Assembly (NCBI GenBank): GCA_946965045.2
Contig: OX337229.1
Span: 868,001 to 932,000, forward strand
DNA: 64,000 bases
Origin: Epithemia pelagica
Taxonomy: Eukaryota; Protista; Bacillariophyta
Direction: 5' to 3'
A program made the position numbers and the translations under genes. Within the stretch, counting starts at the first letter, position 1, and each line of letters opens with the position of its first letter. Positions 1 through 54,184 of this stretch are shown one piece after another. Below the pieces are notes generated by a model, which was not told the DNA's origin, searched no databases, and worked only from the letters and a program-made list of their open reading frames with translations.

Positions 1-575
1 GAAAGATGGTACCTCCACATTCCCAAACATTAATATCTCACGGAGGAATCATGTTGCGCATTTCCTGAGTCTCTCGTAGTTATGGCTGGAACACAGAGAT
101 GAGAAAAAAATACCAAGGCTGGAGACGGACAAGCTGTCCCAACATTTGTATCGATAGCTGTATACGTTCTCCTTTCTCTCATTTGATAAAAAGACTTGTG
201 GGAGTGCAAAGTCTGTGTTGCTACTTGATGATGATTAGAATATGGATGGATTGTTGACAATGGTACTACATCGGTCAGGAACATGTGGTGACGATTGACG
301 ATAGGAGAAAACACCATGAGCTAGAGGTAACCTTACTCCGCTTGCTTTGGTTCCTTTGCTAGATTTGGTCGCGGATTGTGGAGGATGAATACGCGTTGGT
401 CCTTACCCGGGCAAGAGATCTCTTGACGACTCTTGAGATTTGAGATTTGAGATGTACTATTACTAACTCCATACCAGACTGTGTAGGTAGTTCGTCTCAC
501 ATTTTTATACTACAGTAGGAATTTTTTGTACGACCGGGAAGTAGTTTCGTGCGAGTCGCACGGTTTCCCTTTCGT

Positions 576-616
576 GTGTGACACTTGTGAGACACTTGTG
601 TGACACTTTGTGACAT
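576..616. repeat. 11-bp tandem repeat GTG(T/A)GACACTT x3 plus a partial fourth copy
   Basis: gtgtgacactt (576-586), gtgagacactt (587-597), gtgtgacactt (598-608), tgtgacat (609-616). Confidence 0.9.
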
Positions 617-668: not shown

Positions 669-842
669 TACTTCCCTGTGTCTGGCCGTCCTCTCGCGTC
701 GGGCGCGCCCGGCTTGTCGGGAGAATGACTCGACGGGCAATTGTCTTGTCGGGCGTGCGTCCTCCTTGACCATTGCCCTCCTCGTCATTCTACCCTCCGC
801 GCCGGGCGGTCCCTCCTTGAAAGGACTCAACACCGGGAAGTA
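669..842. repeat. Long imperfect inverted repeat / rod-like fold-back (candidate structured ncRNA or MITE)
   Basis: Pairings read by hand: 669-676/835-842, 678-681/830-833, 688-695/819-826, 701-703/811-813, 706-713/801-808, 719-729/784-795, 735-745/768-778, 751-754/759-762; apical loop 755-758. The confidence refers to the fold-back itself, not to its function. Confidence 0.85.
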
Positions 843-959: not shown

Positions 960-3622
960 ATGGCACGACGATTCTTGTTGGTGGTCACGGCATGGACCAC
1001 TCTGGTCCTTTCGACGGATCCAGACTCGTCGTCCTCGCCGGTGATTCAGAATCGTACCACAGTGCTAGCAGCGGAGGACGAAGATCAAGATCCGCATGCC
1101 ATCAAAATTCGTAGATTGATTGGACCGGTGGATCAGATTGTGGTGGATCGCTACAAAAAAGTGCCTACCGGCTTTCGCAAGCATCCTTCGTACTATTCGG
1201 AACGGTACTTAAGACGTGCCAGGACGTACAAGGGCGCCGAAAAGGACAAACTCGATCAATGGGGCAAATGGGAATTCCAAGATCCCGATGAATCCTCTCG
1301 TCCAGGAAATGCCTTTTACGACGACGAAAAGTATACCCATCGCGATGTCCCTCGCAAGGATTTTCCCAAAACGGCCTGGCAAACCGACAAGAAGTACTTG
1401 TCCAAGTTTTTGCCCGAAGCCCTCCAGCTGACAAATCGTGCCTTGGAAGCCATTTTGGCCGAATATGGTCGTGGTAAGGACGACATGCCGGGGGCATCCT
1501 TTGACGAACGAAGTGCACCCTTTCAACCCCGGGTTGGCGACCAGGGGAGTGGTGGAGGAGGGTACATGAAACCATCGTCCTATGAGGGCCTCAAACGTCG
1601 TATTTGGCATGCCGTCATGACGGAAGATCGATTCACCTTTGCCATGGCTGGACATTCGGCTGCGGCAGGTACGTTGTGTACAAGAAACCTTGTGGATAGA
1701 GGAGAGGAAGCAAGGCCCTCACACATCTCTCCTCGTCCTTTGTTGCTTTCTTGTACTCTCTACAGGCCATGGCAACAATTTTCAACAATCGTATACACTT
1801 CAAATTGGACGCATTTGTGAACCAATCTTTGCTCGATTGGGTGTCAAATTTTCGGCTCGCAACTTTGGCTACGGGGGTTTAGGAACGCTTCAAAACGCCT
1901 TGGCCTCGGCCGATATTTTTGGACACGATGTGGATTGTTTACTCTGGGACTCGTCCATGACTGAAAAGGCACCTGAGGCCATTGGAATCTTGGCCATTCA
2001 GGCCTTGATTGCCATGGATCGGGCCCCCTTTTTGTGGTTTACCCGAGACCAACAGTTGAACAAGATTCAAGAAAGCACTGGTGCCGATACGGCTCGGTAT
2101 GGAAGTCCCAGGACTGGCAAACAAGTGGAGGATCCGGCCGAGTTTTCCAACTTACCCTGGGCGATTCAATACGACAGTTGTCCCAAAGATATGAAACGTT
2201 CGCCCATGTGCAGTCGTTGGATTGGATCCTGTTGGGAAAATCGAACCAACTTTGAGTGGGAGGGAATAGATCTATCCTACGTTGCCAAGAAACAACAAGC
2301 CGCTCCCGGTGGTCGTGCGGGATGGCATCCGGGCAACCGAGAACATCAAAAACAAGGACGATCCTTTGCCTTTACCGTACTCTTGGCATTGCGGGACGTG
2401 CTCGAGAAATGGAATAAGGCGCCCGACTATGTCGTGAGCGACAGTGACTGGCATGTCACGGCCTATTACAAGGGCATCAAAGACAAGGTAGCGGAAAAGA
2501 GTGCACTGTGGACTGGTTGGTGCGACAAGCAAAGGGTTTCCAAAAAGTTTTGCATGTATGCCGCCAAGGGACGAACCGAAAACACACCCAGAAACCGGCC
2601 CTGGGCCACCAGTATCCGATCCATCATTTCGGGAAGTGAACATCCAAACCTCAAGGTTGGCAAAAACGCCTATGATCCACCCGATGTGTACATCCCCGCC
2701 CTCCACCCACCAAAAGGCCAAGTCGACGTCCTGGCGATTGTGGAAAACGGTGTTCCCTTTCGTAAGAATTTGGCACGAGTCTACGATTCGGATCAAGATA
2801 TGGAAGGAATCTTCTTTGAAGGAAAGGAGGGAACTGGATCCATTCACAATAAATCGATTGCGGGGGGCAAAGGATGGCAGTTTTTTAATACCCATTCTTC
2901 TACCGGAACCGATAATTGCGATGGAGAGCACGATTCCTGGTGCCGAAGGGTAGGAGGTTGCTTGTTGTATGCGCACAATGATTTACGAACGTACGTTACT
3001 AGCTCTTGTCCTACCGCTGTCGTTGCGAATGAATGAAAGAATGAAAAATTCTTTTTGGACCTAACCTTGTTTTTCATTTTTTGCGTCCCCCCCCCCCCCC
3101 CCGAGCAGTGGATTTGGCGTGGATGGTTACTCTGGATGGATGATCTTCAACCTGACAAAGGTAGAACATGGTCTCGTTTTGCTCAAGTTCCACACCTGGT
3201 CCTTTGGGCCACCAGGGGCCACGAGCAATTGGTGCAGTGAAAACAATGAAACTCCCTGTCAACCTCAAACCAAAGGAAAACATCGTGCCTTGTCGTCGTC
3301 TTCGAAGTCGTCAATTCCTACCAATGTCATGTCGTCCATGGACAATACTACCGTTGTGTCTTTGCCAGAACGCCGACTCAAAGGCAAAGTACCTGCCTAC
3401 TGTGACGATTTCCGGTTTGAATTTGCCATTGACGGAGCCGTTACCTCGTGGAACTTTACGCAATTCCGAGCGCATAAAAATTACGCGCAACGTGTTGTGG
3501 AGTTGGTCACGGTTTTGGATGAGGACCATTGGCCCGTCACGAGGGACGTGGAAGTGGCCTTTCGTCTCACGGGATGTGGTCGTCAAAAGCCATTTGAACT
3601 CACTCATGTCTACTGGATCTAA
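960..3622 (+). CDS. Secreted/membrane-anchored SGNH(GDSL)-hydrolase-like protein, 3 exons (960-1668, 1766-2990, 3109-3622)
   Basis: Hydrophobic N-terminus (RFLLVVTAWTTLVLS). GT-AG introns 1669-1765 and 2991-3108 join three track ORFs in frame (AAG|HGNNF; DLRT|GFGVDGYSGW). SGNH-like blocks: AGHSAAAG, RNFGYGG, WDSSM, GWHPG. Confidence 0.7.
3087..3102. repeat. C16 homopolymer just upstream of the intron-2 acceptor
   Basis: 16 consecutive C residues followed by gagcag|. Confidence 0.9.
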
Positions 3623-4140: not shown

Positions 4141-6707
4141 ATGCCACCTCCACTTCGTATTCCACAAACTGGTCCCCAGTGTCATCAGGAAGGGCTCTCG
4201 TCGTTTCCCTTTCTGGGCCAGGACAGCCCCGAACGTCTCCTCCTTCGCCATGGAGTTATTGACGCAATACCTACTCGTCGATGTGGCAATCCGGGAGGCA
4301 AAAATGTGGTACGAGCGTCATCAGGCCTGCAGAACCACAAATCCATGGACCCACCACTCCCTCTCACCGTCTTGGTTTGCATTTGTAGATTTTGGTACGA
4401 CGTTGCCAAACAAAACGGCGTCGATTTTCTCTTGGCATGCTTCTCCAAACGTTGTGTTGACAGCTCACACGGTGCCTGTTTTGAATTCTGTTTATAATAG
4501 GTGGTTGGAGACGGCATGGGATGGGAAATGGTTCGAGCAGGTGCCATTGCCCGTCGAGTTCTGGATGAATTGGAGGAGTTGGGGATCGATACTGTCCATG
4601 GATCTCCCGGAACTCCCCAAGGTGAAAAGGCATTGGCTGCCTTTCAAGGTCGTACATTAGACGATTACTACACGGAAGGTTTGTGTCTTTGGTCGCCCCT
4701 TCGTACCACTCATGCTCCGTGACTTTGATGCTGGGTGTCTCACCCCATGCACTTTTCGTTTTCCCAACGTACAGGTGCAGGAAGTGGCCTTTCCTTTCAA
4801 AATGAAATGAATGGCTTTACCCTCATGACCACCACTACAATGGTCCTTCAAAGTCCCAATGATGGAAACCATTACGCCCCCGCCAACTCTCTCTTGCAAG
4901 GGTCCGTGTCGGATCATGACAATGGCATGGCACCCTTGGCTCTCAATGAGTGCGGATATCCCATTGATTTTTCTCCATTGGAATATCAACTTGAGGGGGG
5001 CAACATGGTGCTTTGGAACGACGAATTGGGTGGTACATATCCGTGGGATGAACGGTATTATGGTGCACCAGCCTCTGGATCCTTTGATCCTACCTGTACG
5101 TTGGACCATGAACATGGAATGGCGCAGGTGTCGTCCGTTTTCCACTACGAGCTAACTCTTCATTCCCATCTGTTTGTTTTTTGTTGGTGTATTTGGTTCG
5201 CTCTACTATATAGTCATTATCCAGCATGCGACCGATTCGGCGTCGACCGCCGGCTGCATGGCCACAGGACACAAGTCGGCCGTCAGTATGTTATCCATGA
5301 ATCTCTATGAAGAGGCAGTTCCCACCATGGTGGAAAATGCCATGCAATGTGGCAAGGCAGGAGGTGTCGTCACGTCCGTCCCCGTCTTGCATGCCACACC
5401 GGGGGCCTTTGTGGCTCACAGCAACAACCGTCGCAACACGGCACAACTCCAACAATCCTTTGCCACGGTCAAGCCAACTCTAGTGTCGGGCATTTGTCAA
5501 GGTGGCTTCCAACCCTCGGAAGAAACGAAAACTGCCATGCTCAATGGTCATTTATCCAAGGAATGGACCTTTCTTCGTCAAGGCAAAGTTGGCAATACGC
5601 AACAGGATGGCGCTACAGCCGAAAATTTTTATGATTGTAAGTGTGTCATGTTGTAAGTTGCACGTGTACAATGGTGATGTTTTCTCATATCAGTTTTGCG
5701 GTTCATCTGTTTTTTGTTGAAATAGCCATTCAAGAATTGGATCCAGACAATGGTGACCATTTATTGGTGTGTTTTGGAGGAGAGTACGCCACAGACACCA
5801 AAGACCCAGGCAATATGCCATTTCGTGGTCTGGATTCTAGCTACAGTAACCGTTGGTGTTCCAATGCGAATGAAATTCGAGATGTGAATGACAAATTGAT
5901 GGGATACAAACCCACATCGGAAACATGCGACCACTACAGCGAACAAGACCGGAAACAAATCCCCAAAATGAATGTTAATGTTCGAGAAGCCATCAACTTT
6001 CTTGGAAAAGATGACGATGGCTTCTTTATGCTGTACGAACAAGGAGATGTAAGTTATGCATTCTTTGAATTGGTTCAAGCAAACGGATTCGAGTCATATG
6101 TTCTCAATATTTCTTGTGTCGACCATGTTTGCAGATTGACTGGGCTGCCCATGCCAACCACATGGATGATTTGCTAGGTGCAATGTTAGATATCAATGAC
6201 GGGGTCCAGGAGATTCTTGACTGGATAAAGGACAATGGTGGATGGGAGAAGAATGCTTTGTACGTAGGTGCGGACCATGATCATTATCTCACCCTTCTAC
6301 CCAGTTTTCCTGAGGCTGTGGCGAAACACATCATCATGGGTGAAACTCATAACCTCACGCCACAAAACAACTCGAACAAAAACCCTTGGACTGGAGCTGT
6401 GAGTATCGGTCGTCACAAAGATCCTTCCAAAACACAAAAAGAACATATCGCCGACTTTACCACGTGGACCGATGATGACATACAAAATGTCGCGCATTTT
6501 TGGGGTCCCGATGGTGCCGGCGGAAACGGTTGGGGCTCTCATTCGAAACGTCCAGTCCCTCTTTATTACATGGGAGACGGTGGTTGCATTGAGGCTTTAA
6601 TGGGAAAGGGGTTTCAGGTTGTGGGTCGTGAAGTTTCCGGTGTGGACGGCAAAATAGACCAAATGCATCTTCATGCATGTATGTTGAAGAACCTTCTTGG
6701 GCTCTAA
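4141..6707 (+). CDS. Alkaline phosphatase (PhoA-type), 7 exons (4141-4308, 4389-4394, 4501-4678, 4775-5095, 5214-5636, 5726-6048, 6135-6707); start uncertain
   Basis: After splicing the protein carries GKNVILVVGDGMG (metal Asp), TDSASTA (catalytic Ser), HATPGAF, EQGDIDWAAH and ADHDH. All introns are GT-AG and preserve frame. No clear signal peptide at ATG 4141. Confidence 0.85.
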
Positions 6708-52606: not shown

Positions 52607-54184
52607 TTAGGCCACTTCCATGTTGGCCAAGGCCTTGTGCAACGGATTGTTTCGTAGCGTGAGTTGCAGATTGGTTCGTGTCATGGAAAGAGTTTCGGGT
52701 GGCGTCCTGGTCGTCGTGGAATGGTACAAGGGACGGTGTCCCGAAGTACTACTGCTGCTGGACCACGAATAAAAGGAAAAGACATCGTGCCACTCCGAAT
52801 GCAACAAGGACGACGAGGACGACGACGAGGATGAGGAGGAAGCCAGAGGGGGAGTGGGTTCCAAGGGATTGGTAAATTCACTCGTTTCACTGACAGAGGG
52901 AGGAATGGCACTACTCCGACTGCTGCTGCTGTAGGAACTTTTTTTGCCCAAACTCTTCTTTTTTTTGGTACGAGGAGGATGCAGTGATGACTTGGTGGTA
53001 GTGGATGGTTTGCTTCCCGCACTAGCGTCTCCAGTCGTTGTGGGTACTGCTGCTTTGGCGGCTGCTTTGGTAGTAGTCGTAGTGTGTTTGCCATGAGTGA
53101 CCATGGCCATGATGGGTGTTCCTCCTTGATGGAGTCTTCGGGCCGTGAATTCTTGGACGGTGGGATTGGACATGCGCCGATGAATGGCCGGCACAAGGGG
53201 GGACGGCACGGGGGATACGGATCGGGCCGTCGCGGTCGTAGTACTTGTGGTGGACCAGGGATTGCTGGGGCGAGGCGAACTGGGAGGAGTCGTATTCGTA
53301 GTACTAGTACTACTAGTGTTGGAGGATACTGTCGATGGATGAGACCGACGCTGCATCGGGGAAGGCGATCGAGATCGAGCGGTTCGTGGATTGACTTTTT
53401 TGTTGGGAGAGGAAGGAGTGGATGTTAGATCTCGTAGAGTAGAAGCCTTTGCCTTGGCATTGTTGCTGGGTGTCTTGGTGGGAGAAATGGGTGGTTTGGG
53501 ACGTGATGGTTTCCCCACGACGGAATCCCCACTAGGAGTTCGTAGAGTCTTTTGGGCAAAGTCCAGGAGGTCCGTTTTGGTTTTTTCCTTGTGTTGCTTG
53601 GACCGACTGGAAGAAGAATGTTTTTTGCGTGCTGTTTGATCCGGGCTGGTATAGGCCGATCGTACTTCGAGATCTTCGTGTGGTTGCGATTGTTGTTCTT
53701 GTTGTTGATCCAAAAAGAGGCCCAGTTTCAATGCTCCTGCTGAAGCTACACTGGGCTTTTTCCGACGCGGGGAGGATTTTTTGCGTCGTTTGGAAGGACT
53801 TTTGAATCCACTGCCGGTGGATTGTGCACCACGGCTCATTTCACTGGCAGTGGATCGTGATCCCGAACTGGCCACGGATTGACTGTCGCCATTGCTGCCT
53901 CCTCGAAGCTTGTGTTGACCCGAAAAAAAGACATCGAGAGGATCACTTCGTGTCTTGTTAGTCGTTCCATTCAGGCCCAGAGACGAGGGGAAGGATTGTT
54001 TGAGGGACGACGACTTTTCGGGGACCAGGGCCTTGGGTTTGCCACTCTTTTTGCGGGGAGTGGCCGTCATGGCGGAGTACTGCGACGACGATACCGCTCG
54101 TGACATTTTCAGACTTGCCGAAGAGACCGAGTTGGTCGAACGTGTGGATTGCGGTTGTTGTTGTTGTTGGCTTGGTTGCGCCAT
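52607..54184 (-). CDS. Ser/Lys/Arg-rich disordered protein, paralogue B
   Basis: Long ORF, first ATG at 54184; shares three C-terminal motifs with 49024-50865. Confidence 0.7.
   Translation of the reverse strand: MAQPSQQQQQPQSTRSTNSVSSASLKMSRAVSSSQYSAMTATPRKKSGKPKALVPEKSSSLKQSFPSSLGLNGTTNKTRSDPLDVFFSGQHKLRGGSNGDSQSVASSGSRSTASEMSRGAQSTGSGFKSPSKRRKKSSPRRKKPSVASAGALKLGLFLDQQQEQQSQPHEDLEVRSAYTSPDQTARKKHSSSSRSKQHKEKTKTDLLDFAQKTLRTPSGDSVVGKPSRPKPPISPTKTPSNNAKAKASTLRDLTSTPSSPNKKVNPRTARSRSPSPMQRRSHPSTVSSNTSSTSTTNTTPPSSPRPSNPWSTTSTTTATARSVSPVPSPLVPAIHRRMSNPTVQEFTARRLHQGGTPIMAMVTHGKHTTTTTKAAAKAAVPTTTGDASAGSKPSTTTKSSLHPPRTKKKKSLGKKSSYSSSSRSSAIPPSVSETSEFTNPLEPTPPLASSSSSSSSSSSLLHSEWHDVFSFYSWSSSSSTSGHRPLYHSTTTRTPPETLSMTRTNLQLTLRNNPLHKALANMEVA

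Follow-up and report, generated by a model that had tools for sequence, protein, structure and literature searches.

DIRS retrotransposons cannot transpose without their ICR, a region that is complementary to both extremities of the element and overlaps the 3-bp junction of the circle; a trinucleotide is found at both ends of these elements, with no TSD (PMC7192593, PMC3266345). Cryptons carry short direct repeats and no TIR, are present in diatoms and include non-autonomous families (PMC3212892). Their transposition is described as a model only, their ends as unstructured, and the ICR is regarded as a feature of DIRS retrotransposons. Two bacterial systems are known in which one strand is folded before recombination. 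In integron attC, purine skew in the unpaired parts helps to select the recombined strand (PMC5027507), and in CTXphi attP(+) two inverted sites of one strand fold together and form a recombination site whose centre is unpaired (PMC3442271). Replitrons, which are elements of HUH type, have short terminal direct repeats and were not detected in diatoms (PMC10288648).

We analysed a window of 64,000 nucleotides of Epithemia pelagica DNA (contig OX337229.1), in which a sequence-only reading had marked a hairpin at 669-842 as a candidate structured RNA. We found that this 174-base hairpin is no RNA gene in its own right but makes up the right half of a mobile element of 389 bases that is present in many copies. 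The fold itself was as described: 669-842 formed a single long fold-back, an unbranched rod on either strand, and all quoted letters were at their positions. Folding of both strands with RNA parameters and shuffled controls gave -92.2 kcal/mol (z = -7.7) for the plus strand and -101.9 kcal/mol (z = -9.1) for the minus strand; with DNA parameters the values were z = -4.3 / -4.5. This was the strongest local fold-back within the 64-kb window. The second-strongest, at 53660-53990, consisted of three near-perfect short hairpins in a 530-aa minus-strand ORF.

The hairpin is located in a gap of approximately 930 bp between two plus-strand genes. The gene at 960-3622 is unannotated, starts 108 bp past the element and encodes a putative signal peptide with no Pfam match. 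It has an intron near 1666-1762, and a contig of run X4 was spliced there with a GT..AG joint (1665-1763), which identifies the window as eukaryotic. A 7-bp unit is present in three perfect copies at 433-453, immediately left of the insertion site.

We aligned four public contig sets to positions 101-1900 of the window. In set X1 the summed contig depth was 25,000-228,000 over 461-880 and 100-330 on the flanks, and in the public contigs the excess of 461-851 over the flanks was 100-1000-fold. Summed contig depth is no copy number, but even the minimum within the element (approximately 12,700) implies tens to hundreds of copies. The contigs broke into unrelated flanks on the left at 461 or 463 in all four runs, and on the right at 851 or 852 in two runs (X4 and X5). 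No break at 669 was among the loose ends listed, beside which there were 43 weaker ones. Individual contigs from other copies covered 461-839, 461-735 and 591-734, which means that the hairpin moves together with 200 bp on its left. Therefore the limits of 669-842 proposed earlier were too narrow: the element spans 463-851 and includes a second fold-back, 462-491 with 635-664. It is non-coding, and its 389 bp, as delimited by contig depth and loose ends, comprise a 386-bp unit and one CTA. The family was also found in biofilm and sediment metagenomes whose contigs lack cover of these flanks; no second copy was present within the 64-kb window. The sequence L020 was the same as the window (99.99%) and is hence not an independent strain. 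The evidence that the feature is mobile, as opposed to an RNA gene in single copy, is good, and we consider it very probable.

Both ends of the element carry the triplet CTA on the plus strand (TAG on the minus strand), at 463-465 on the left and at 849-851 on the right, and in the contig alignment it was invariant across differing flanks. The left triplet lies within TACTA (461-465) in this copy, with divergence points at 461 and 463; the triplet is the putative site of crossover. TA preceded the triplet in three of five left flanks, and all three right flanks had T at the third position past it. This resemblance of the flanks to the joined element ends around the triplet suggests, for the few flanks seen, that the crossover may be guided by homology. 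Terminal inverted repeats were absent, as the two termini do not pair mutually. The right terminus contains a perfect 12-bp palindrome (839-850), which together with the left end makes an imperfect dyad over the joined ends.

The two ends pair instead with an internal segment. On the plus strand, the ICR-like splint at 635-676 is complementary to the left terminus through 635-660 and to the right terminus through 662-676. The left terminal arm (466-491, plus strand) pairs with 635-660 as part of the second fold-back (30 nt, 83% complementary; z = -5.1). From left to right the element thus consists of A (466-491), the interior, A' (635-660), B (662-754) and B' (759-851). When 635-676 was tested against 466-491 and 834-851, we obtained one continuous register: the two pairings meet exactly, with 851 and 466 adjacent and facing 661 and 660. 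The junction duplex is imperfect. The junction CTA lies opposite 661-663 with one A.A mismatch, one bulged base is nearby, and there is a T.C mismatch. With the ends joined, the element forms a single rod, in which 88 Watson-Crick pairs are interrupted by 29 mismatches and 5 gaps, and the 386-nt circle folded with z = -6.6 (plus) and -11.4 (minus) under RNA parameters and about -7 under DNA parameters. The interior (492-634) is variable, lies at the far end of the rod and holds most indels of the family. The end motif recurs there for a third time, as CCGGGAAGTA at 534-543, beside an 11-bp tandem repeat at 575-613 (3.5 copies).

This anatomy resembles DIRS1-like elements in several points: an internal region can pair with the two extremities placed next to each other and meets them at a 3-bp junction, an identical triplet is present at both ends, and there is no ordinary TSD. 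DIRS1-like elements pass through a single-stranded intermediate, which is proposed for the present element as well (PMC7192593, PMC3266345). It differs from them in that DIRS1 has inverted terminal repeats (66-316 bp) whereas the ends of this element do not pair, and in that the DIRS1 triplet is NTT and not CTA. Further, the element is non-coding and has none of the DIRS1 genes (GAG, RT/RH, MT and YR), and its splint is imperfect and runs on into a 90-bp purine-zipped rod. An assignment to DIRS1 thus fails on the missing inverted terminal repeats, and by its anatomy the element would act like a DIRS ICR or like a folded-strand site of a tyrosine recombinase (YR).

With Cryptons, in particular CryptonS of oomycetes and diatoms, the element shares the absence of TIRs, short direct repeats at both ends, abundant non-autonomous copies and, in the model proposed below, a circular intermediate (PMC3212892). 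The repeats described for Cryptons are 4-6 bp long (TATGG in most CryptonS), in contrast to the 3-bp CTA (TACTA in this copy). Neither an ICR nor a hairpin is described for Cryptons (the word hairpin occurs 0 times in PMC3212892), and the CryptonS-like elements that we fetched had other ends and no rod. In a literature search we met with no Crypton or diatom element for which ends of this kind are described. In attC and CTXphi attP(+), a single strand likewise folds to a duplex site with an imperfect centre, and one strand is favoured, with purine skew in the unpaired parts; in our element the fold shows a strand asymmetry. Those systems are bacterial, the parts of their descriptions at hand contain no periodic tandem G.A modules, and the site of the present element forms only once its ends meet. 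A blastn search of phage and plasmid collections revealed no similarity to the element. Replitrons also share short terminal direct repeats, non-autonomous families and the single-strand chemistry proposed here, but they have no ICR and only a short terminal palindrome (PMC10288648).

Further, we compared the internal loops of the hairpin. The four 5x5 loops reported earlier are present, with left strands GCGTC (696), TTGTC (714), TCGAC (730) and TTGTC (746), right strands TCCTT (814), TCCGC (796), TCCTC (779) and TCCTT (763), and a central G-C pair in each. Read on the minus strand, the loops are modules 1 (696-700 with 814-818), 2 (714-718 with 796-800), 3 (730-734 with 779-783) and 4 (746-750 with 763-767), and their ground motif is two tandem G.A steps flanking one G-C pair. 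Module 1 is a perfect double tandem G.A in one subfamily. As noted earlier, GGG/CCC follows the loops of modules 1-3, and module 4 has GGG/TCC in this copy. The G.U pair noted there exists but belongs to this copy only: T at 760 and 767 is private, most family contigs have C at both positions, and the majority letters restore GGG/CCC and GAGGA. The rod is thus built of helices of 7-8 bp plus GGG/CCC, split by four modules of GA-G-GA / GA-C-GA type, which keep all perfect duplexes at 13 bp or less.

The recurrence of the modules was unlike simple decay, as had been argued before. We simulated random decay of a perfect inverted repeat to the same 23 mismatches, and four modules of the order mismatch-mismatch-pair-mismatch-mismatch arose in approximately 3e-5 of the decays (about 3 per 100,000 trials). 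The placing of the G.A pairs on the minus strand also held: in a strand-neutral alignment we counted 18 purine-purine mismatches on that strand, 16 of them G.A, and 3 pyrimidine-pyrimidine mismatches (p = 0.0015). Decay of an inverted repeat favours no strand, and such a bias is therefore unlike decay. G.T and A.C mismatches were equal on the minus strand (4 and 4). The G.A-tolerant pairing score of 669-842 was 112.5 on the minus strand and 66 on the plus strand, with a background of up to approximately 65-72, and the family-majority letters at 760 and 767 stabilised the minus strand by 7.6 kcal/mol and the plus strand by 1.8 kcal/mol.

A subfamily with a different outer helix is represented by loose ends of X5 at 705 and 808, the latter position being shared with X1. 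This helix is changed on both arms and still pairs in 9 of 9 positions, adjoining a perfect GA-G-GA / GA-C-GA module; the arms are known from short pieces of two different contigs, both of the same run, with their linkage assumed. The exchange of the helix with retention of the module, together with the purine-purine bias on the minus strand only, agrees with the earlier view that the modules have been selected for the structure of a folded single strand. Tandem G.A steps are common in RNA too, and as the motif is stable in both DNA and RNA it does not tell one from the other. The lack of a G.U excess on the folding strand leans slightly towards DNA. Sheared tandem G.A pairs are known to be stable in DNA. 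There, tandem GA steps stack strongly (PMC8163305).

We propose that the element is non-autonomous and is moved in trans by a YR through a folded, end-splinted single strand, and we give this reading about even chances. The minus strand would be freed as single-stranded DNA and would fold into the rod. The internal segment would then splint both ends side by side and allow closure into a circle; alternatively, the splint may shape the ends into a folded core site for the YR, imperfect at its centre. The junction would be closed or recombined by a YR provided in trans, with crossover at CTA/TAG with a similar chromosomal site, and each end would retain the triplet. Because of the G.A modules only the minus strand would fold well, which would fix strand and orientation; the modules may double as protein docking sites. 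Several observations stand against the YR reading. No autonomous partner was present among eight Crypton-like YR elements that we fetched, the stability of tandem G.A is equal in RNA, and the covariation comes from the pieces of two contigs mentioned above. Moreover, neither a circle joint nor an empty-site joint was found in the four contig sets, in which rare forms are dropped. The wider proposal, that of a eukaryotic group of RT-less DNA transposons in which a YR acts on a folded single strand with an internal splint and G.A modules choose the strand, is tentative and seems to us rather doubtful. If true, it would provide a eukaryotic counterpart of integron and CTXphi recombination and would connect Cryptons with DIRS on structural grounds. 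A high-copy element of 389 bp, reduced to a splint and a strand-specific purine zipper, is small enough to be synthesised as a minimal substrate, and it would allow a direct test of whether eukaryotic tyrosine recombinases use folded single-stranded DNA.

The same anatomy can be read in other ways. A non-autonomous DIRS-like retroelement would be transcribed, a YR retrotransposon would lend its RT to turn the transcript into single-stranded cDNA, the ends would be restored and joined through the ICR, and a YR would integrate the product. The splint of both ends and the triplet at each end are hallmarks of DIRS1, the DIRS RT acts in trans (PMC7192593), and the element sequence was found in the RNA-like run X4; since the pair of inverted terminal repeats is missing and the termini are CTA and not NTT, we consider this origin unlikely. 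Ordinary double-stranded cut-and-paste of Crypton type, with the internal copy of the ends as an accessory binding site and the rod as a transient cruciform or read-through RNA, would account for the short direct repeats without TIR, the imperfect dyad at the joined ends and the third end motif at 534. It leaves the strand-specific purine-purine mismatches (p = 0.0015) and the replacement of a helix on two arms unexplained, and the Crypton-like elements fetched had no such rods; such a mode of movement appears quite improbable. Helitrons end in TC...CTAG, and these ends are missing from the element. More generally, a single-stranded DNA transposon of an HUH nuclease, following the logic of Replitrons, Helitrons or IS200, would use the hairpins as recognition sites. 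HUH enzymes work on single strands and recognise hairpins, the fold here is strand-specific, and the short terminal direct repeats have their parallel in Replitrons; however, diatoms yielded no Replitrons, whose hairpin is moreover just a short palindrome at the terminus, with no ICR (PMC10288648), so that we hold an HUH origin to be a poor candidate.

Further from the data is the first interpretation of the hairpin, in which it is a structured non-coding RNA of its own whose four loops bind protein. The RNA fold is very strong, the module is repeated and the change of the helix is compensated, and the Rfam check gave no match at both thresholds (one chance hit, E = 4); ARAGORN found nothing on the element either. 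Against this interpretation, the family has its limits at 463 and 851 and occurs in many copies in unrelated flanks, with a very large pile-up, and the fold continues across the joined ends. Many dispersed copies were among the results that the sequence-only reading had itself named as refuting it. Run X4, the only RNA-like one, which we take as RNA because it was spliced and without intergenic cover, contained the element in contigs that continued into foreign flanks, as would read-through of other copies. The X4 contigs, which cannot show RNA ends or strand, gave no sign of a discrete 174-nt RNA. A stand-alone RNA is thus very unlikely. Equally part of the sequence-only reading was the alternative of a mobile element; this much was right, but not the Tc1/mariner type, for the ends proposed for it are internal and the true ends are CTA direct repeats. 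A Stowaway-like MITE at 671-840 with TA duplication would rest on TA-CTTCCC...GGGAAG-TA, which resembles Stowaway ends. It was rejected since the true ends at 463 and 851 are not inverted repeats of each other, there are no listed loose ends at 669, the contigs of other copies run across its left border, and the mismatches are strand-biased and periodic, unlike those of a decayed inverted repeat; we regard it as extremely improbable. As a caution, rod-like 'RNA' candidates of diatom genomes can be transposon ends.

Known RNA motifs were considered as well: SECIS, k-turn, SRP helix 8 and telomerase template were rejected, as the loops are symmetric and there is neither a GNRA apex nor a template. 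A degenerate pattern of the modules had 19 matches in metagenome contigs, nearly all of them GC-rich and bacteria-like, and none resembled the element by blastn. Patterns of the modules and ends gave no match or chance matches in viral and prokaryote-genome contigs. Two GC-rich, probably bacterial contigs (L013:900-1050 and L014:1480-1660) contain hairpins of repeated TCGGGAG / CTCCCGAC units with variable spacers, which are superficially modular and unrelated to the element.

With regard to the proposed YR, we infer its link to the element from anatomy. The search for a partner started from a Crypton-like gene located 30 kb upstream on the same public contig as the window, with only its first exon as the query. 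We collected approximately 500 relatives of this recombinase, with the residue set R-K-H-R-H-Y; close relatives came from Epithemia, Fistulifera and Grammatophora, and from an Atlas cluster of Bacillariophyta. Viral and genome contigs gave no related loci. We examined eight YR elements of Crypton-like type, four from the same assembly (L024, L025, L037/38, L039) and four from other assemblies (L026, L027-36, L040 and L041/42). The rod was absent from all eight, and the five compared by blastn shared no ends with our element. One of those fetched had TGTTC direct repeats in several different flanks and another formed a tandem array with a TTGTGA junction; both behave as typical Cryptons.

The array (L037/L038, ENA ERZ21939226 ctg1186l) consists of a CryptonS-like YR element arranged head to tail, with a 4676-bp unit in at least 3 copies from L037:5711, which fits circle integration or rolling amplification. 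The L025 element ends in the TTGTGA of this junction as well. Two Crypton YR genes are preceded by GACACAC repeats to which the 11-bp tandem repeat in our element (window 572-615) was similar (L037:5805-5822, 16/18 identical), a match that was not significant (E = 0.5). The element with TGTTC direct repeats (L027-L036, protein P0014) is young, intron-less, Crypton-like and approximately 3.2 kb long, with varied metagenome flanks; some of its copies have TGGTC at the right end and one flank in common. In L039, long fold-back arrays of TGTGGAT type (540-760 and 5300-5530) surround a DDE_Tnp_4 (PIF/Harbinger-like) gene pair beside the YR gene. The Crypton-like element at L024:5650-11820 has two extra ORFs (154 and 259 aa) with no Pfam match. 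Close to each of its ends lies a copy of an 11-bp direct repeat, and the YR gene is preceded by a G-rich region with strand asymmetry.
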